Shown: positions 31 to 6,026, counted from the first letter of the stretch. The stretch is DNA of 6,026 bases from Paramicrosporidium saccamoebae KSL3 (GCA_002794465.1 MTSL01000022.1:12093-18118), one strand, 5' to 3'. Made by a program: numbers and translations. Notes: a model not told the origin generated them from the sequence alone.

Positions 31-1251
31 ATGTTAATATGGATGACAATATGTCTGCTCACTATAATAGCACTAGCTGCTACCTCGCAGCCCATATCCA
101 AGCTCGACTACTTTAAACTGCTACGACAAGCGAATGAAGGGCTTGAGAATGATACGGGCTGTTATCAACCACTTTTTCATGTGCCACCCTTTTCAGAATA
201 TAGTGACAAATCATGTACTCGCCGAGACTTTAAGTATTTCAAGACAATCACCCAAAGTGAAGAGTCCCATATATACTTTGCACAACACAGTGCCGTAAAC
301 AAGATGGTAGTCATCAAAAGCGTCCAAAAAGCTTTTTTCGATTCGATCAGGATGGAAGAGATAGCTCTCTATGTGCTCAAGCACAAAAATATCCCGGATG
401 GTATTTGCACCTTTTCCGATATAGAGGGGGAAATGGTGGATTTGGTTATGAAATTTGATACCATTAAGACTCTCGAAATGTGGAAAGATGGTCCTGAGGC
501 TGCCAAAACCGACTTTCTTCGAAATGTGGCTCGCCAGATGGTGGAGGTGATGATTTATCTGCACGACCATTACATCGTCCATAACGACATTAAGCCCTCC
601 AATATTTTGGTATCCGACGAAGGAGTGGTCAAGCTGATTGATTACGGTCTGGCCACTATGTGTGCCCTCGATGGCACCACGGACGGAACCGGCACTCCGT
701 TATACAACTCCCCAGAGAAATTATCCGGACCTTACAATAATGGGGCAGACTGGTATGCACTTGGACTAACACTACTTGAAGTCAAGATGGGAGGACACCC
801 GTTTTATCATATCCGGGACTTGGATTATCTAGAAAAAGCTGCCAAAAAAGGAATAGTTGTAAACACGGGCGATTGCTTGTTTGATGACTTTGTCAAAATG
901 ATTATCCATGTAGATCCCGACCAGCGTTGGAGTCATGCGAATGGGAATGTGCCCAATATTCTAAACCATCCATTTCTCGCGGATCCAGACAATTTGACAG
1001 AGCCAAAGGCCCAGGTCGAGCCTGGCACACCACCGAATCTCAAGACAACGGAAAGGGCGCCTATTTCGGGTGGTGCAGTAACAAGTCATCACAACCGTGG
1101 TGTGCGACGGGCAGATGCACGCCAGATTGTTTATCGGTCGATAGTCCTGCTTACATATCTATTGTGGCTCGTGGTGGACCCAATCCACCATGTTCAAGGA
1201 ACAATGGCCCTCATATGGAACATTGATCAGTTAGAGGAATCCGTTTTATAA
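31..1251 (+). CDS. Predicted secreted or membrane-anchored Ser/Thr protein kinase (ePK fold, non-RD, glycine-free P-loop), 406 aa
   Basis: Kinase motifs occur in order: VVIK Lys (316-318), alphaC Glu (355-357; E-x8-H in EEIALYVLKHKNI), HNDIKPSN (580-603), DYG (640-648), GTPLYNSPE (691-717), DWYALG, DPDQR and HPF. ATG at 31 gives a hydrophobic N-terminus (MLIWMTICLLTIIALAATS). The ORF track's GTG at 25 is not a likely start. The frame is open to the window edge, so a more upstream start cannot be excluded. Confidence 0.9.
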   Translation: MLIWMTICLLTIIALAATSQPISKLDYFKLLRQANEGLENDTGCYQPLFHVPPFSEYSDKSCTRRDFKYFKTITQSEESHIYFAQHSAVNKMVVIKSVQKAFFDSIRMEEIALYVLKHKNIPDGICTFSDIEGEMVDLVMKFDTIKTLEMWKDGPEAAKTDFLRNVARQMVEVMIYLHDHYIVHNDIKPSNILVSDEGVVKLIDYGLATMCALDGTTDGTGTPLYNSPEKLSGPYNNGADWYALGLTLLEVKMGGHPFYHIRDLDYLEKAAKKGIVVNTGDCLFDDFVKMIIHVDPDQRWSHANGNVPNILNHPFLADPDNLTEPKAQVEPGTPPNLKTTERAPISGGAVTSHHNRGVRRADARQIVYRSIVLLTYLLWLVVDPIHHVQGTMALIWNIDQLEESVL

Positions 1252-1353
1252 AAACCGAACTATAACCATTACAACCAGCTCTCGTTTGGCGTGTGCAAAA
1301 AGATTTCTCTATATAGATTGTAGTGATACCAAGGACACTGTTATCCGTGCCAA

Positions 1354-1374
1354 CCAATGAGGACAATTGTTTAC
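1354..1374 (+). promoter_or_regulatory. CCAAT-N9-TGTTTAC module upstream of gene A
   Basis: CCAAT 1354-1358 (-60 from ATG) and TGTTTAC 1368-1374. The same arrangement recurs upstream of C and D. Confidence 0.65.
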
Positions 1375-1413
1375 TAAACAGTTACATTCCATCGGTGTGG
1401 GCAGTTGAGCAGC

Positions 1414-2331
1414 ATGAGGCTCCTCGTCGCCGCAATACTGACGCTAACTTCCATTCATGCATCCAAACAAGGGAAAATTAATACAATAGAAAGGGAGCTT
1501 GATGAAAGCTACTATGACGTCGATGCAGCCGTTGTTCCCAGCCTGAGACGGAACGTGCGCATCACTATTCCTCAGGAAAGTAAACATCAGTCCAAGAAAC
1601 AGAGCCAACAGCCCAAGAAAAGTGGCAAGGCCAAGAAATATGAGTACTATTCTGAAGAGTATACCACTGAAAGCTATGATTCTGAGGGATCTACCTATGA
1701 AGTATCAGATCCAGGTTCGGAATATATTCCCGAAGTATCAGAGTCAGATTCGGAATACATTTCTGAAGTATCAGAGTCAGATTCGGAATACATTTCCGAA
1801 GTATCAGCGTCAGATTCGGAATATCTTCCCGGAGTATCAGCGTCAGATTCGGAATATATTTCCGAAGTATCAGAGTCGGATCCGGATTATAGTCCCAAAG
1901 TATCGGATTCAGGTTCGGAATCTATTTCTGAGGTATCAGAGTCAAGTCCGGATTCATCTAGCGCCCCTACTGAGAGTGAATATTGGAGCACTTCGGACAT
2001 TGAAGACTTTACAGACGGCGCCGATGATCCTATGGAGGTGATAGAGACTGTTCTGAAAGATCCCACAGCATATACCGAGGAGGTGACAGACGTAATGCAG
2101 CAGCTTATTGATGCCGACGAAATTATAGTGGCGGCTGATTTGGCAAAAGTGCTCTGCGAAAAAGTCTACAGGAAGAAAGCAATTAATATACGGCTACCAA
2201 GCCGCAAACTAGATTCACAGGACACGCAGGATTTCCACGCCATCTGTGAGGCATGTCCCAACAAGACATCAAATTTCATGCAATTCTGCAGTTCAATCCA
2301 ACCCAGACAAATGAGAAATAAGCGGAACTAA
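1414..2331 (+). CDS. Putative secreted protein A (305 aa): signal peptide, basic patch, acidic Ser/Glu 11-aa repeats, C-terminal 4-Cys domain
   Basis: First ATG at 1414 (the track starts at TTG 1405) gives MRLLVAAILTLTSIHA. The in-frame 33-nt repeat preserves the frame. The C-terminal domain aligns with proteins B and C. Confidence 0.88.
   Translation: MRLLVAAILTLTSIHASKQGKINTIERELDESYYDVDAAVVPSLRRNVRITIPQESKHQSKKQSQQPKKSGKAKKYEYYSEEYTTESYDSEGSTYEVSDPGSEYIPEVSESDSEYISEVSESDSEYISEVSASDSEYLPGVSASDSEYISEVSESDPDYSPKVSDSGSESISEVSESSPDSSSAPTESEYWSTSDIEDFTDGADDPMEVIETVLKDPTAYTEEVTDVMQQLIDADEIIVAADLAKVLCEKVYRKKAINIRLPSRKLDSQDTQDFHAICEACPNKTSNFMQFCSSIQPRQMRNKRN
1717..1947 (+). repeat. Coding tandem repeat, 7 x 33 nt (11 aa, consensus SEYISEVSESD)
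   Basis: Units start at 1717, 1750, 1783, 1816, 1849, 1882 and 1915: SEYIPEVSESD / SEYISEVSESD / SEYISEVSASD / SEYLPGVSASD / SEYISEVSESD / PDYSPKVSDSG / SESISEVSESS. Confidence 0.95.
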
Positions 2332-2598
2332 ACTGTGACTCATTGACATTTTAGTCCGTAAGCATTGCCACAGTAAGCCTGCCCTTATAGCAATAACGTG
2401 TTGGATGTGGAAAACTATCGCCAGTCTGTTCATTAATGGAGATAATCTACTGTCATCGTGTTGGGACGTAGGATGTTCACATATTCAACTACCCACCCTC
2501 TTATCTTATGATCATACAGGGAATAAATAAGCTAGAAAATTCCGGTTATGGATGTAGACTTTTTATGCCCTGGTCCGGTATACTAACACTACGGACAT

Positions 2599-2618
2599 TG
2601 TTTACTTGTCGGTCCAAT
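2599..2618 (+). promoter_or_regulatory. TGTTTAC-N8-CCAAT module (swapped order) upstream of gene B
   Basis: TGTTTAC 2599-2605 and CCAAT 2614-2618 (-62 from ATG). The flank GGACATTGTTTACT nearly equals GGACAATTGTTTACT at gene A. Confidence 0.55.
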
Positions 2619-2675
2619 AAGCTGTAAGCGACTATTTAATCGTTGGATCGTCCGCTGGAGGGACAACAACACTCG

Positions 2676-3887
2676 ATGAAGATTCAACTGCTTGTAGCCT
2701 CTCTCCTTGCCTTGGGTACTGCCGGCCAGCTGGGCCAACGCCACCCCCAACGGATGAATTTCTGGCAAGACCTCGAACGCCAGCAGCAGCAGCCTCAACA
2801 GTACCAGCCCGGTCCAGCTCGACGCCGGGAACCCAATCCAAACCTTCAGAGTCGCCTCGACTTTTTCCAACAACAAGAACAGCCGATGCAGTACCAACGC
2901 GAGACCCCATATGCACGCGTCGGGGCGGGCATTAGAGAGCGTATGGGTGCATTCATGCAGCAACCGCAGCAAACAGTACGTGAACCAATGCGCTCGACAG
3001 GTGTGAGCCAAGGCGTTCAGGATCGGATGAGAGCGTTTGCACAACCGATGAATCAGCAGACATTGGGGCCGCAAAGAGGAAGCCGACTTAATATGGATAG
3101 TTATTCAGCGTTCAATCAGTCGGCACCCGCCCCAATGGAATCGAGACCGAGATATGAATATGCCAGTCGGACGCAGCATCAGCAATCCCCCCAGCAATAT
3201 TCTCCTCCCGAACCGACACCCTATGAAGCCCCGATACAATCTTATGAAAATGCTCCTCGGGAATACTCAGAGCCGTCCTTTGCTTATGAGCTTCAAAATG
3301 CACCGAAGGCTATGTATGATCATTCTCCCATAATGTCCACAGAACCGGCTTATTTGTACAATGAACCATTATTAGAGCGGGAGGGAGCGCAGCCTGCAAT
3401 GCCGACGGAGGAATACTCCTACCAGCCCGAACCCTCACCTGTACAATACCGTGAATCTGGCAGCAACGTTGCCGAGATGGCAAATCTCATGAACAGTAGA
3501 GCAAATTCATTCCACGCCCCGCCTGAATACAGTCCGCCAAACCCATACAATCCCGGTATGGAAGGTGATCTGGACCAGGCTATCGAAGATTTAAAGAATA
3601 TTAGAATCAAAGGTGCGGGCCTGAAGTCGGCTTTGGGAGTAATCGCAAATTCTCAAGACGCATCTGAAAGATTTATGGAGATTAAGAGCGCTCTGCAGAG
3701 ACGTACTAACAATAATCTCGTCGACGATGTTATATTGGCAGCAAAGACTCCGGGATTCTGTCAGAATGTTTTTGGAGAAAGATCTATTCCATTAACCATG
3801 CCACAGGGCAATCCACCGAAAGCTGCCCAGCTGTCCAAGACCCTGTGTGACTACTGTCGAAACTTGGTTAGAACTTGTAGAGCATGA
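2676..3887 (+). CDS. Putative secreted protein B (403 aa): signal peptide, Q/P/Y/R-rich disordered region with repeated amphipathic motifs, C-terminal 4-Cys domain
   Basis: First ATG at 2676 (the track starts at TTG 2643) gives MKIQLLVASLLALGTAG. Long ORF, AATAAA directly after the TGA, and C-terminal similarity to proteins A and C. Confidence 0.9.
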   Translation: MKIQLLVASLLALGTAGQLGQRHPQRMNFWQDLERQQQQPQQYQPGPARRREPNPNLQSRLDFFQQQEQPMQYQRETPYARVGAGIRERMGAFMQQPQQTVREPMRSTGVSQGVQDRMRAFAQPMNQQTLGPQRGSRLNMDSYSAFNQSAPAPMESRPRYEYASRTQHQQSPQQYSPPEPTPYEAPIQSYENAPREYSEPSFAYELQNAPKAMYDHSPIMSTEPAYLYNEPLLEREGAQPAMPTEEYSYQPEPSPVQYRESGSNVAEMANLMNSRANSFHAPPEYSPPNPYNPGMEGDLDQAIEDLKNIRIKGAGLKSALGVIANSQDASERFMEIKSALQRRTNNNLVDDVILAAKTPGFCQNVFGERSIPLTMPQGNPPKAAQLSKTLCDYCRNLVRTCRA

Positions 3888-3893
3888 AATAAA
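3888..3893 (+). terminator. Putative polyadenylation signal AATAAA of gene B
   Basis: Canonical hexamer immediately after the TGA (3885-3887). Confidence 0.55.
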
Positions 3894-4062
3894 ACCGTGA
3901 TTCGCATAGACTTGAAAAAATTGGCAGTAACTAGTGATCCAATTGCGTGTAGGGGCAACAGTCATCGTATAGCAGACACTCTAACGGAAGTAACTTTTAT
4001 CTAATCCCATATTAATTGTTCACTAGGGAACAAAAACGTCTGCGTACACCCTACGATAAACC

Positions 4063-4102
4063 CACCTACTCACCTACTCACCTACTCACACATCCACCTA
4101 CC
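4063..4102. repeat. 8-bp tandem repeat (CACCTACT) x3 plus 2 degenerate units
   Basis: CACCTACT at 4063, 4071 and 4079; CACACATC at 4087; CACCTACC at 4095. Confidence 0.85.
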
Positions 4103-4108
4103 AGTCAG

Positions 4109-4129
4109 CCAATTAGAAAAGTTGTTTAT
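4109..4129 (+). promoter_or_regulatory. CCAAT-N9-TGTTTAT module upstream of gene C
   Basis: CCAAT 4109-4113 (-62 from ATG) and TGTTTAT 4123-4129, followed by an AT-rich TATCTATATAT at about 4136-4146. Confidence 0.65.
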
Positions 4130-4170
4130 TCAACTATCTATATATTGATCCCCACGACGTTGAAACTTTA

Positions 4171-4893
4171 ATGAAGCTTTCAAGTCAGGTCCTCATTTCC
4201 TTACTGTTTTCTTCTGCTATTGCTGGTGGGTATCAGCAATCCGCCAGGTATAGAGACTTTGGCATCCCCCAAAGGGACCAGCCGAGCAAAAGAAATGTCC
4301 AGGCGGCACGAGCCCAGTTCGAAACCCAACCCGTTGCACCCGCAAGAGCCCCGTATTCACAACCAGCTCGACGTAAGCTGGATCCCTCAAGATATCCACA
4401 ACAGACATCGGCCGGATACACCAGAAGCTCAGTGGCACCGGTGCAGGCAAATTTGGTGCAACAACGGCGTGCAGCATTTGAGAGTGCGCCCGAACCTGTA
4501 GTGAGATCTACGCCACGACCAGTGCAACGTGCCATGTGGTCGCAGGCAGTCCAGCAGGAACCTGAAGAACCGCAAAACTATCAAAATATACAATTTGATG
4601 AGAAACCGGATGATCTTTTAAAGACTCTCTCGGATTACAATGTGTCGGGCAGAGAGCTATCTTTCGTGCTGGACATATTGGTGAGGACACCAAATGCATC
4701 CGATTATGCTTTGCCTATCCAAAGAGCCATACAGAATAAAATCTGGAAAGGACAGTTTGGAGATGCGGCTTTTATAGTCTCTTATCCAGGCTTCTGCAGA
4801 AAAGTGTTTGAGAGTTCCCATCCAATCTTTTACTTGCCCGATTCTAGCGAAGCTGATGAGTTGGATAATGCGATAAATCTTTATTGCTCATGA
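4171..4893 (+). CDS. Putative secreted protein C (240 aa): signal peptide, Q/P/R-rich region, C-terminal 2-Cys domain
   Basis: ATG at 4171 gives MKLSSQVLISLLFSSAIAGG. Ungapped 69-aa alignment to protein B (17 identities including PGFC..VF). N-terminus is similar to protein D. Confidence 0.9.
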   Translation: MKLSSQVLISLLFSSAIAGGYQQSARYRDFGIPQRDQPSKRNVQAARAQFETQPVAPARAPYSQPARRKLDPSRYPQQTSAGYTRSSVAPVQANLVQQRRAAFESAPEPVVRSTPRPVQRAMWSQAVQQEPEEPQNYQNIQFDEKPDDLLKTLSDYNVSGRELSFVLDILVRTPNASDYALPIQRAIQNKIWKGQFGDAAFIVSYPGFCRKVFESSHPIFYLPDSSEADELDNAINLYCS

Positions 4894-5117
4894 GGGAGTG
4901 GTGGAAACTCTGGATAAAGAATGTGATTGAATAGGACGTCCTTGCTACACAGAGTCACCCTACCAAGACTAATTCAACTGCCAGCCAAATTAAGATCAGA
5001 CCACACATTATAAGCAGGTGCAATTCATAAAAAGCTTGCTTTCCTACTAAATTGATAGAAACTAGAAGACTATATGATTATAGGATTTTACTATTACAGG
5101 GCTATATGGGCACTTGG

Positions 5118-5138
5118 CCAATAGCCGCAATTGTTTAC
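5118..5138 (+). promoter_or_regulatory. CCAAT-N9-TGTTTAC module upstream of gene D
   Basis: CCAAT 5118-5122 (-62 from ATG) and TGTTTAC 5132-5138. Confidence 0.65.
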
Positions 5139-5179
5139 CAAACATCTTACTTATTGGAGGGCTATGCAGGCGTCACTCT

Positions 5180-5635
5180 ATGAAGCTTTCAATCGTTTTC
5201 ATTGCTCCCGCCCTCTTCCTCACAGCTGAAGCAGGTGGTCGTTTCCCTCGATCCGAATACAGAAACCTCCATGCCGGTTACAATCAAACGAACGTAGGTG
5301 CTTTGAGAAATAGATACGAACAGGAAGCGCAACCGCAACAAAGTAGTTACGGCGGACAAAATGTCAGACGACTCGACAATTCGAGATACGACTTTTTAAA
5401 CAAGCCGTATGAGGGAACGCCCTCATATCGGGCCCCACCATCGAGATATCCGCCCCCACAACGACAGGCACCGGTGGAGGAGTACTATGACACTGACTTG
5501 TCCTATGTCCCCAACTCGTATTCAGTCCCCGGTAGAAACTACGAAAACCCCGACGGCAGTTACAATCTCTATGCACCACTCACCGTCACCAATACAGAAG
5601 AGTCACATCGACGCCGGCATGCTCCCTACTACTAA
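5180..5635 (+). CDS. Putative secreted protein D (151 aa): Tyr/Pro/Arg-rich, Cys-free, lacks the C-terminal domain
   Basis: First ATG at 5180 (the track starts at TTG 5114) gives MKLSIVFIAPALFLTAEAGG, 10/20 identical to the protein C N-terminus. AATAAA lies 17 nt after the stop. Confidence 0.85.
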   Translation: MKLSIVFIAPALFLTAEAGGRFPRSEYRNLHAGYNQTNVGALRNRYEQEAQPQQSSYGGQNVRRLDNSRYDFLNKPYEGTPSYRAPPSRYPPPQRQAPVEEYYDTDLSYVPNSYSVPGRNYENPDGSYNLYAPLTVTNTEESHRRRHAPYY

Positions 5636-5652
5636 CGACCATGTCAATTAGA

Positions 5653-5658
5653 AATAAA
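5653..5658 (+). terminator. Putative polyadenylation signal AATAAA of gene D
   Basis: Canonical hexamer 17 nt after the TAA. Confidence 0.5.
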
Positions 5659-5720
5659 AGGGATCTTGTAAGAATCAATCCATAGCAGCCAGGAAAGCCC
5701 GTTCAAGCCGACATTAAATC

Positions 5721-5876
5721 CCACCGGCTCATGGTAACATTCGATTCCACCGGCCCATGGTAACATTCAATTCCACCGGTCCGTGGTAACATCCAATTCC
5801 ACTGATTCATGGTAACATCCGATTCCACTGATTCATGGTAACATCCGATTCCACTGATTCATGGTAACATTTAATC
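5721..5876. repeat. 26-bp minisatellite, 6 units, invariant core TGGTAACAT
   Basis: Units start at 5721, 5747, 5773 (CCACCGG type) and 5799, 5825, 5851 (CCACTGATTC type). Units 4 and 5 are identical; the last is degenerate at its end. Confidence 0.95.
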
Positions 5877-5916: not shown

Positions 5917-6012
5917 TACCACCTAACCATCCAGTCCCTCAACCACCTAACCACCCAGTCTCTCAACCACCCAGTCTCTCAACCACCCAGTCTCTCAACC
6001 ACCCAATCTCTA
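5917..6012. repeat. C-rich 16-bp tandem array (AACCACCCAGTCTCTC) with a 24-bp higher-order start
   Basis: Perfect 16-mers at 5949, 5965 and 5981; two-mismatch copies at 5925 and 5997; 8-bp [T/A]ACCACCT inserts at 5917 and 5941. Confidence 0.92.
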
Positions 6013-6016
6013 TTTA

Positions 6017-6026
6017 CCCCCCCCCC
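6017..6026. repeat. Poly-C run at the window end (at least C10)
   Basis: Ten consecutive C residues terminate the sequence. Confidence 0.9.

Follow-up and report, generated by a model that had tools for sequence, protein, structure and literature searches.

The final 6,026 nt of the Paramicrosporidium saccamoebae contig MTSL01000022.1, referred to here as the window, carry a leader-bearing protein kinase gene (K2) followed by four genes (A, B, C and D) whose predicted proteins are one modular family built from two modules. The genes A–D have promoters of one design, conserved in position and sequence in a second species. Our overall account is a secreted cassette with shared CCAAT/forkhead control of A–D, the products being perhaps extracellular structural material, and we put it forward tentatively, as somewhat short of an even chance.

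P. saccamoebae is a microsporidia-like organism which inhabits amoeba nuclei and forms spores with a polar filament (PMC5701793). This fits an earlier note on the same DNA, in which a spore wall or an invasion apparatus had been named among the structures that the products might build.

Gene layout and the deposited annotation

The window is nuclear DNA of P. saccamoebae (Rozellomycota), bounded by an N10 scaffold gap and the contig end. Five co-oriented genes with ATG starts, 162–344 nt apart, had been described on the + strand, and both coordinates and spacers were confirmed (K2-A, A-B, B-C and C-D spacers of 162, 344, 283 and 286 nt, respectively). All − strand ORFs in the window are short and lie antisense within these five genes. 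ORFs A–D are intron-less and separate, each with its own short promoter. The features, with the basis of each in brackets, are as follows.

31..1251, + strand: K2, leader-bearing protein kinase, 406 aa (Pfam Pkinase match, AF2 core)
31..87, + strand: K2 leader MLIWMTICLLTIIALAATS, with an 18-aa apolar run (mean Kyte-Doolittle hydropathy 2.18)
1117..1176, + strand: K2 C-terminal hydrophobic helix, residues about 363-382 (AF2 helix)
1354..1374, + strand: A promoter composite, CCAAT (-60), N6, AATTGTTTAC, forkhead core at -46 (motif and conservation)
1414..2331, + strand: gene A, 305 aa, acidic and Ser-rich, pI about 4.3, with a C-terminal helical 4-Cys domain (ORF and orthologue)
1699..1944, + strand: tandem repeat in A, 33 nt x 7.5, 11-aa units SESDSEYISEV (TRF score 324, 83% matches)
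2026..2328, + strand: C-terminal helical 4-Cys domain of A (hhalign against a profile of B, C and relatives)
2598..2618, + strand: B promoter in reversed order, TTGTTTAC (-77), N8, CCAAT (-62) (motif and conservation)
2676..3887, + strand: gene B, 403 aa, Gln/Pro-rich, with three RxxxF..P motifs and a C-terminal domain (ORF and orthologue B′)
3528..3884, + strand: C-terminal helical 4-Cys domain of B (AF2 model)
4109..4129, + strand: C promoter composite, CCAAT (-62), N6, AGTTGTTTAT (-48) (motif)
4171..4893, + strand: gene C, 240 aa, N-terminal part resembling that of D, C-terminal domain resembling that of B and keeping 2 of the 4 Cys (pairwise matches)
5118..5138, + strand: D promoter composite, CCAAT (-62), N6, AATTGTTTAC (-48) (motif and conservation)
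5180..5635, + strand: gene D, small, Tyr/Pro/Arg-rich, 0 Cys, 151 aa, a hypothetical protein in the record (ORF, record)

Housekeeping genes (RPB1-like and RPS7e) lie upstream and are followed by the array K1 (outside the window), K2, A, B, C and D at the repeat-rich contig end. The array is lineage-specific and tandem, with two paralogous leader-bearing kinases and then the four A–D genes.

In GenBank, A, B and C are fused into PSACC_00230 (PJF19954.1, a 950-aa hypothetical protein), which covers the same DNA and takes 292, 382 and 238 residues from them, respectively, whereas neither K1 nor K2 has a gene call in the record. The splice spans of this model are 2290-2699, 3846-4027 and 4121-4176; 7-aa and 31-aa exons are invented from promoter and spacer DNA, and conserved termini are dropped. 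If the deposited annotation were correct, A, B and C would be exons of one protein and the kinase ORFs would be non-genes. A Trinity transcript assembly did inform the MAKER annotation (PMC5701793), and the introns of PSACC_00230 can be drawn with GT..AG ends. However, the fusion costs A and B their final conserved Cys motif, deletes start codons and cuts away the leaders of B and C in whole or in part; it runs through the 7-aa mini-exon, and its last intron opens at the conserved promoter element GTTGTTTAT and closes with the AG of ATGAAG. Moreover, in a metagenomic relative, in which two contigs overlapping by 91 nt at 100% identity gave the gene order A′-B′-D′, the three are separate ORFs with conserved termini, A′ and B′ lie 1.6 kb apart, and C is missing between B′ and D′. 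The kinase ORFs are also intact and conserved, with a strong Pfam match, and are under constraint. We consider the fused model to be very improbable, and A, B, C and D are, as judged from sequence, real and separate genes. The supplements of the genome paper make no mention of PSACC_00230 or PSACC_00231.

The A–D family, its promoters and its leaders

It had been noted earlier that the four proteins share modules pairwise, and the matches bear this out: the C-terminal B-C match had an E value of 3e-9, the N-terminal C-D match 3.6e-6, the B-D match 7.5e-4 and the C-terminal A-B match 0.004, the last link reaching a hhalign probability of 97.3% (E=2.5e-11) with independent profiles. The first module is N-terminal, compositionally biased and of low complexity: in A it contains acidic Ser-rich repeats, and in B, C and D it is Gln/Pro/Arg/Tyr-rich and carries short RxxxF..P motifs (3 copies in B vs 0.42 expected). 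The A repeat is replaced in the relative by another acidic Ser-rich repeat at the equivalent site. The earlier description of the proteins as Ser/Thr/Tyr-rich suits A (27.5% S+T+Y) and D (23.8%, with 11.3% Tyr) but not B and C (about 16-17.5%), which are Gln/Pro/Arg-rich.

The second module, found in A, B and C, is a C-terminal helical domain of about 110 aa with four conserved Cys. Its signature (..EIKxAxQRR.., GFC, IC-x-AC and a last C) is present in all three, minus two Cys in C; the four Cys are kept in A, B and all relatives, while D has none. The B domain was modelled by AF2 with seven helices (pLDDT 81.4, pTM 0.74). No known family or fold matched the domain in Pfam, PDB sequences, PDB folds (Foldseek) or BFVD, and Pfam-A scans of A–D and seven domain copies (E<=1) gave no polar-tube or spore-wall family. 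A HMMER search of 1.84 billion representatives returned 6 proteins, namely the fused model, the A and B orthologues, and three small secreted proteins. The family was found only in the Paramicrosporidium clade, and not in Microsporidia proper or Rozella. This predicted helical 4-Cys domain is a new domain family.

The orthologues have their own leaders and matching stop positions (P0123, the orthologue of A, begins with a separate leader and ends in an A-like C-terminus). The dN/dS values, 0.17-0.32 for A′, B′ and D′ and 0.17-0.38 overall, are rough, since dS is about 1 and near saturation. A and A′ share 45% identity at dS about 1 (dN/dS 0.32) and B and B′ 54% (dN/dS 0.30), while D, the best conserved gene in the cluster and more strongly conserved than the kinase, shares 74% amino acid identity with D′ (dN/dS 0.17). 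Clear purifying selection was seen on D and on the 4-Cys domain. One more distant relative has a domain-only homologue adjoining RPS7e, like the P. saccamoebae arrangement, and another relative has a tandem pair of a B-like gene and then a domain-only gene, which suggests that the locus may be ancient. Neither housekeeping hits nor lost synteny, which the earlier note had named as grounds for abandoning the cassette, was found; the order A-B-D is syntenic in the relative and the leaders are conserved.

A common promoter design had also been claimed for the four genes, and 7 of 7 A–D-type promoters from the two species have CCAAT at -58 to -64 together with a forkhead-type core TRTTTAY, both assigned as consensus matches. 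The core lies about 46 or 77 nt and CCAAT about 60 nt before the ATG, at positions conserved in the second species. CCAAT-N6-ARTTGTTTAY precedes each of A, C and D, with 3 occurrences vs 0.00 expected from 200 shuffles. In the relative, the A promoter block is near-invariant, with no alignment in the distal spacer, and TTGTTTACTTGT..TCCAATAAGCT in the B promoter and GGCCAAT..ATTGTTTAYCAAACAT.CTTACTTATTGG in the D promoter are conserved. The Mei4/FLEX regulon of fission yeast comprises middle meiotic and spore-formation genes that are activated by the forkhead factor Mei4 via the core (G/A)TAAA(C/T)A, the reverse complement of which is the TRTTTAY element before A–D (PMC4795683 for the yeast core). 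The element stands at a fixed distance before A–D. Its core is here paired with CCAAT 6-8 nt away, within 80 nt of the ATG, and the likeness to the yeast regulon is one of consensus match only.

The CCAAT/forkhead promoter was not found before K1, K2 or three related kinases. The idea of a co-expressed cassette is supported for A–D, with their common promoter conserved in two species, and not for the kinases. The A–D gene family together with its conserved promoter lends support to a cassette of co-regulated genes for secreted proteins, and there is good indirect evidence, at the sequence level, that A–D are co-regulated.

Each of the five proteins starts with M(K/R), then an 11-18-residue apolar run with small residues at -3/-1. 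This pattern (leaders of 16-20 aa) was found in 15 of 15 cluster-family proteins from four organisms and in 0 of 5 housekeeping neighbours. The signal-peptide-like N-termini reported earlier were therefore recovered and are conserved across relatives, these calls being a heuristic on N-terminal pattern and hydropathy, and the products of the five genes are supported as putative secreted proteins.

The kinases K1 and K2

K2 matched Pfam Pkinase (PF00069) with E=3.9e-34 and 118.7 bits, against a cut-off of 31.7, over profile positions 10-263 of 263, and its core has a canonical fold in AF2 (pLDDT about 90). The best Foldseek matches were MEK1/PAK/ASK1/Aurora/PKA (target-normalised TM-score 0.76-0.85 vs solved kinases), and the nearest kinases in both sequence and structure are ordinary STE/AGC-type kinases at 20-30% identity; no 100% match to K2 was found in the protein database. 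The catalytic set K96 (beta3 Lys), E109 (alphaC Glu), H184-N-D186, N191 and D204 (DYG) is invariant in alignments, with catalytic residues aligning to PKA D166/N171/D184. With these residues intact, K2 may be an active kinase. The GxGxxG Gly-rich loop is absent from K2, at which the beta1-beta2 turn reads TQSEESH (FQDEETR in K1), about 7 residues shorter in K1/K2 than in one relative keeping GYGRG.

K1, just upstream of the window, is a paralogue of K2 (69% identical, dN/dS 0.61), and the kinase shares 49% identity with the metagenomic relative at dS about 1. The K2 leader is conserved in K1 and in three kinases of the relative. At the C-terminus, a disordered linker (residues 323-362 in AF2) precedes the hydrophobic helix, which is borderline as a membrane segment because its best 19-aa Kyte-Doolittle mean, about 1.59 by hand calculation, falls just under the 1.6 scan cut-off. 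The helix may be a membrane anchor; this segment is kept in K1 and missing from the relative's kinases.

Toxoplasma WNG1, ROP kinases, Plasmodium FIKK and the expanded signal-peptide kinase families of two microsporidia resemble K2 in kinase fold, leader, tandem paralogues and fast evolution (PMC6442604; PMC5423893), and WNG1 likewise has no Gly-rich loop and keeps the catalytic Lys/Glu/Asp/Asn (PMC6442604). However, K2, which comes from a fungal-lineage parasite of amoebae, appears not to be homologous to WNG1/ROP/FIKK at the family level. The FIKK motif was not found in subdomain II, where 5 of 5 kinase-family members have VVIK, and no WNG/ROP entries were among the best 60 PDB sequence matches or the best 50 structural matches, all canonical kinases, the WNG comparison being made through these match lists rather than by direct alignment to WNG1. 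The ROP/FIKK analogy drawn earlier is thus retained as a functional one only, as the closest kinases are of STE/AGC type.

Leader-bearing kinases might phosphorylate A–D in the secretory pathway or after export and so steer assembly, which would be compatible with either a structural or an effector role. Known pairs of this kind are the Golgi casein kinase Fam20C with S-rich secreted proteins, and WNG1 with dense-granule proteins. Kinase and A–D genes are physically adjacent in P. saccamoebae, leaders are present on the kinase and on the putative substrates, and the 7.5 acidic Ser-rich repeats of A offer many S-x-x-E/D sites. The catalytic residues are intact, and a kinase without the Gly-rich loop can still be active, as WNG1 is (PMC6442604). 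Against this, the kinase and A–D promoters differ, and the relative has its kinases in their own tandem array on a contig other than that of A′-B′-D′ (the contigs may or may not adjoin), with no kinase within 467 nt upstream of A′ or in the A′-B′ gap. No kinase adjoins the domain-only homologues of more distant relatives, and in one relative's kinase Arg replaces the catalytic-loop Lys. We regard a kinase-substrate cassette as improbable.

Possible roles of the products

In the structural account, a CCAAT-factor and a forkhead-type activator would turn on the four A–D genes jointly at one life-cycle stage. Guided by their leaders, the products would enter the ER and become disulfide-bonded in the Cys domain before export, and they would then be deposited during spore formation in the spore wall or the polar-filament/invasion apparatus. 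Perhaps the helical Cys domain is a folded assembly module, with the Tyr/Pro/Gln-rich and acidic repeat regions forming an extended matrix, possibly cross-linked or modified. The neighbouring kinases would share the secretory route, with the C-terminal helix possibly anchoring those of P. saccamoebae; they may phosphorylate cargo or host proteins and would be regulated separately from A–D.

PTP1 and PTP2 of microsporidia are encoded in a tandem cluster. A–D resemble microsporidian SWPs and PTP1/PTP2 in their short leaders, conserved Cys (four in many SWPs), Ser/Pro/repeat-rich bias, fast divergence and tandem genes (PMC5697631, PMC5701793). Typical spore-wall proteins have 15-20-aa leaders and four conserved Cys, and are Ser/Gly-rich and very divergent (PMC5697631); measured against these descriptors, which are non-specific, A–D agree in leader length and, for A and B, in Cys number, and only A is Ser-rich. 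On the other hand, Pfam and Foldseek scans detected no sequence or fold likeness of A–D to known polar-tube or spore-wall proteins, and the helical 4-Cys domain is not described there. The polar-filament proteins of P. saccamoebae could not be found by homology, with no PFP hits in the proteome (PMC5701793). That A–D are extracellular spore or invasion-apparatus material is the reading which we favour, if with some doubt.

The same array could instead be a host-directed effector cassette of the ROP/FIKK type, with kinases and A–D released in the amoeba nucleus to act on host nuclear proteins or chromatin. Its lineage-restricted, tandem-duplicated arrangement at a repeat-rich contig end fits effectors equally well, and the fast evolution of the kinases and of A also speaks for them. 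Other intracellular parasites, two microsporidia among them, have known or predicted families of secreted kinases (PMC5423893; WNG1, PMC6442604), and since the parasite is intranuclear (PMC5701793), its exported proteins would meet host nuclear proteins directly. However, D and the Cys domain are under purifying selection, the homologue beside RPS7e in the distant relative suggests a conserved parasite-intrinsic role, the kinases are without the A–D promoter, and no host-targeting motif was identified. An effector role comes second to the structural one and appears rather unlikely, if less so than the kinase-substrate cassette; both the kinase-substrate link and the choice of a structural over an effector role are what we infer.

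Returning to the structural account, its most specific form, in which A–D (the helical 4-Cys family and its Tyr/Pro/Gln-rich partners) would be the hitherto unidentified polar-filament/spore-wall proteins of the rozellid lineage, turned on jointly by a forkhead/CCAAT sporogony programme and with a nearby pair of dedicated Gly-loop-less secretory kinases, is a long shot. If A–D do prove to be polar-filament/spore-wall proteins, the invasion apparatus would for the first time become accessible at the molecular level outside canonical Microsporidia, and a single origin of the polar filament would become testable.

A tandem array of leader-bearing genes at a contig end

Five long ORFs, each starting with an ATG, were mapped on the + strand of the window: K2, a kinase gene with a secretory leader, and four genes for putatively secreted proteins, here named A, B, C and D.

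31-1251, + strand: K2, long ORF, ATG start
1414-2331, + strand: A, long ORF, ATG start
2676-3887, + strand: B, long ORF, ATG start
4171-4893, + strand: C, long ORF, ATG start
5180-5635, + strand: D, long ORF, ATG start

The spacers between them (162, 344, 283 and 286 nt) agree with the earlier note, which had described five + strand genes 162-344 nt apart. Its count of five genes held inside the window and not for the whole array, which has six, since a paralogue of K2, referred to as K1, is present upstream. L004 below is the record of contig MTSL01000022.1 (18,118 nt, assembly GCA_002794465.1), in which the L004 position minus 8587 gives the window position.

L004 7014-8192: K1, intact ORF of 392 aa, given as lying 1.4-2.6 kb before the window begins
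L004 8578-8587: N10 scaffold gap, immediately before window position 1

The window starts directly after this gap and ends with the contig, and the K1-K2 spacing is uncertain because the gap lies between the two genes. Further upstream, an RPB1-like gene (+) and RPS7e (-) are followed by 3.5 kb with no gene call in the GenBank record, and this stretch contains K1 and, after it, K2. The - strand ORFs of the window were all short and antisense within the five genes, no RNA family was matched by Rfam on the window, and its G+C content was 42-54%. A bacterial, phage or giant-virus origin was rejected, with no Shine-Dalgarno sequences detected and with RPB1 and RPS7e on the same fungal-lineage contig. 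Before the contig stops, its final 300 nt are filled by tandem repeats with units of 26/52 nt (window 5711-5875, about 6 copies) and of 16/24 nt (window 5918-6011, about 4 copies), and the terminus itself is a C8 run (window 6019-6026). The terminal repeats are probably the reason that the assembly stops at this point; no canonical telomere repeat was seen in this repeat-filled end.

Scored by a heuristic rather than by SignalP, a leader composed of M(K/R), 11-18 consecutive apolar residues (mean hydropathy 1.8 or higher) and then small residues was found in all 15 proteins of two families from four organisms, and in none of five housekeeping neighbours. Orthologues keep their leaders, and this, together with the paired cysteines, adds weight to the assignment; judged by these features, A-D and the kinases would be exported. 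P. saccamoebae is placed at the transition from free-living-like rozellids to Microsporidia, and the cluster is of a familiar kind, namely lineage-specific tandem secreted-protein genes of an intracellular parasite.

Four separate genes and their common promoter

In GenBank, A, B and C are fused into a single model, PSACC_00230, with the following exons.

Window 1414-2289; a 7-aa mini-exon; 2700-3845; 4028-4120; 4177-4890

This model drops the last conserved Cys motif of both A and B. In it, B and C also lose their start codons and, wholly or partly, their leaders, and its last intron runs from the GTTGTTTAT promoter element to the AG within ATGAAG, where C starts. The B-C spacer contains an 8-nt repeat, CACCTACT (3.4 copies, window 4060-4101), and this spacer with its repeat is translated within a 31-aa 'exon' of the deposited model.

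The A-B-D part of the cluster is syntenic in a relative known from metagenomes. There, the orthologue of A (A', P0123) carries a leader of its own and the same end as A, B' forms a separate ORF of 426 aa with the terminus ...CPNLARNCRA as in B, and D' directly follows B', with C absent between them. The contigs carrying A' and B'-D' overlap by 91 nt at 100% identity, which gives the gene order A'-B'-D'. Although rough (dS about 1), the dN/dS values of 0.32 for A, 0.30 for B, 0.17 for D, 0.37-0.38 between K2 and the kinases of the relative, and 0.61 between K1 and K2 indicate that the genes are real and under constraint. Conservation is highest in D, with 74% identity versus 49% for the kinase. 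AATAAA was found 1-20 nt after the stops of B (window 3888-3900), B' (L005, a contig of the relative, 2862-2870) and D (window 5648-5656), positions consistent with separate polyadenylated transcripts that would have very short 3' UTRs. A-D are separate transcription units, and the corrected gene map differs from the deposited one by two overlooked kinases and one false three-gene fusion. The locus tags of the cluster are not mentioned in the supplements of the P. saccamoebae genome paper.

The common promoter design that had been proposed for the four genes was also recovered, as CCAAT-N6-ARTTGTTTAY occurs three times in the window (0.00 expected), directly before A, C and D, and TTGTTTAY six times (0.53 expected); in the B promoter, CCAAT and the forkhead-type core stand in reversed order. 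Promoter alignment across species was confined to the last 70-90 nt before each ATG, with the composite block nearly invariant. CCAAT lies at -58 to -64 in 7/7 promoters (A, B, C, D, A', B' and D') and the forkhead-type core at -44 to -50, or at -77/-78 in B and B'. The promoter is common to A-D and conserved between species. The four kinase promoters that are intact lack this layout, and so do those of RPS7e and RPB1; the K2 promoter was left out of the comparison because the scaffold gap cuts it 30 nt upstream of the ATG. By consensus match only, the reverse complement of the A-D core equals (G/A)TAAA(C/T)A; in fission yeast, Mei4 uses this forkhead/FLEX core to drive spore-formation genes (PMC4795683). 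The shared promoter suggests that A-D are co-expressed and, being compact and position-conserved in two species, it could serve to identify the other members of a stage-specific regulon. Several spacers of the relative's cluster contain a short repeated element (L012 1-81 and L005 380-459), which precedes A', recurs in the A'-B' spacer and is also present close to the kinases; similar GGCCGGCCACCCGATTT-type units were seen in the spacers of contig L001.

The two kinases

K1 and K2 are 69% identical and have the same leader. No 100% match for either was present among 5.8 billion database proteins, so both are unannotated, and an exact look-up of the K2 sequence gave no match. K2 matched Pfam Pkinase (E=3.9e-34), and its C-lobe alignment to PKA showed the catalytic Asp, the Asn and the DFG-equivalent (DYG) all to be present. 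In our alignments, K96, E109, H184-N-D186, N191 and D204 were invariant within the kinase family and in more distant kinases; K2 is a non-RD kinase (HND), and K1 has SRE at the SPE (APE-equivalent) motif of K2. The AF2 model of K2, with pLDDT of about 90 in the kinase core, best resembled MEK1, PAKs, ASK1, Aurora and PKA in structure comparison, at 19-25% identity.

K2 belongs to the protein-kinase superfamily but is missing a canonical element, the glycine-rich loop; its beta1-beta2 turn reads TQSEESH and is about 7 residues shorter than in one relative that keeps GYGRG. The loop-less state is common to K2 and WNG1, a likeness in the loop only that does not imply kinship, and K2 does not belong to the FIKK kinases. 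After a disordered linker, a hydrophobic helix (residues 363-382; best 19-aa Kyte-Doolittle mean about 1.59 by hand, which is borderline) is kept in K1 and absent from the relative's kinases; it is a possible membrane anchor.

Close relatives of K2 (47-49% identity) were found only in three JGI metagenomes, one 4.1-kb contig of which holds at least three tandem kinase copies with the same leader. In a search for related loci with the kinase alignment, the only matches were three generic kinases (28-29% identity). A fourth copy in the relative (P0003, 259 aa, L002 480-1525) ends early, about 175 nt beyond its stop are homologous to the other copies, and a second ORF overlaps its end; a frameshift in a pseudogene or an error in sequencing is the probable cause. 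That the leader-bearing kinase acts on A-D as its substrates would be compatible with either a structural or an effector role for them, and we consider it improbable; the promoter and synteny evidence adds nothing in its favour.

A new cysteine domain, its probable history and the possible role of the cluster

As the earlier note had claimed from pairwise sharing of modules, BLASTP linked the C-termini of B and C (3e-9), the N-termini of C and D (3.6e-6) and B with D (7.5e-4), with a weak link between the C-termini of A and B (0.004). Independent profiles of the A/A' domain and of the domain in B, C and relatives matched at an hhalign probability of 97.3% (E=2.5e-11). This C-terminal domain, of about 110 aa, has four conserved cysteines (GFC ... 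IC-x-AC ... C), two of which are kept in C; D is without it. From a three-sequence alignment, AF2 modelled it as a seven-helix bundle (pLDDT 81.4, pTM 0.74). No match was found in Pfam, the PDB sequence profile, the PDB fold or the viral fold (BFVD) searches, where nothing was significant (best Foldseek TM-score below 0.5, E above 0.4). A domain-profile HMMER search of 1.84 billion representative proteins led to the 950-aa PJF19954.1, which is PSACC_00230 itself; a word-index search with an 8-sequence domain profile found P0124 alone, and exact look-up and word-index search with C found no match. The domain family is new, folds confidently in prediction and is clade-restricted, and by sequence A-D appear to lie outside every described family.

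The N-terminal parts of the A-D family are strongly hydrophilic (GRAVY -0.7 to -1.5). A is acidic (Ser 16.7%) with a 33-nt repeat of 7.5 copies, B and C are rich in Gln/Pro/Arg, and D has Tyr 11.3%, Pro 10.6%, Arg 9.9% and no Cys. An RxxxF/Y..P motif was significant in B only (3 versus 0.42 expected), so that it is a weak descriptor and the N-terminal relationship rests on BLASTP. A 139-aa alternative-frame ORF (window 1622-2041, +) was rejected as a gene, being a by-product of the 33-nt repeat in A (33 = 3 x 11).

Three small proteins of 147-163 aa from other assemblies consist of leader and domain only. One such gene adjoins RPS7e and is encoded on the other strand, an arrangement also seen for the P. 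saccamoebae array, and this RPS7e is by eye highly similar to that of P. saccamoebae; in another assembly, a B-like gene (low-complexity N-terminal part and domain) is followed by a tandem domain-only gene. No kinase was adjacent to the domain-only genes on those contigs. In the simplest history, an old secreted domain gene beside RPS7e expanded and gained extensions in the Paramicrosporidium lineage, and the kinases joined later or independently. A MAPEG-family gene lies 3' of the domain-only gene in two more distant relatives (L007 2327-3193, L008 1135-1869); the P. saccamoebae contig ends before any such position. By co-linear protein similarity, the head of C resembles D and its tail resembles B. 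A tandem duplication of [B tail-spacer-D head] would yield just such a gene, and C may have arisen in this way. At the nucleotide level the two putative units have only the 13-nt promoter core in common, and the absence of C from the relative may equally well reflect a loss there.

P. saccamoebae is an intranuclear parasite of Saccamoeba with a polar filament in its spores; its genome paper did not find polar-filament proteins by HMM/homology search and left it open whether the filament arose once (PMC5701793). We tentatively rank first, at somewhat less than even probability, the reading in which A-D would be structural proteins deposited outside the cell, in the spore or the invasion apparatus, on account of this biology and the features that characterise microsporidian spore-wall proteins as a class (PMC5697631), the strong constraint on D and the domain, and the conserved locus with its forkhead-type developmental promoter. 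Ranked second, and rather unlikely in our view, A-D would be host-directed effectors, to which lineage restriction, tandem duplication, the repeat-rich contig end and the precedents for secreted kinases (PMC5423893; PMC6442604) point. If the proteins are ordinary lineage-specific effectors, the result is a useful annotation fix and no surprise. The locus offers a short, concrete list of candidates for spore or host-interface proteins.
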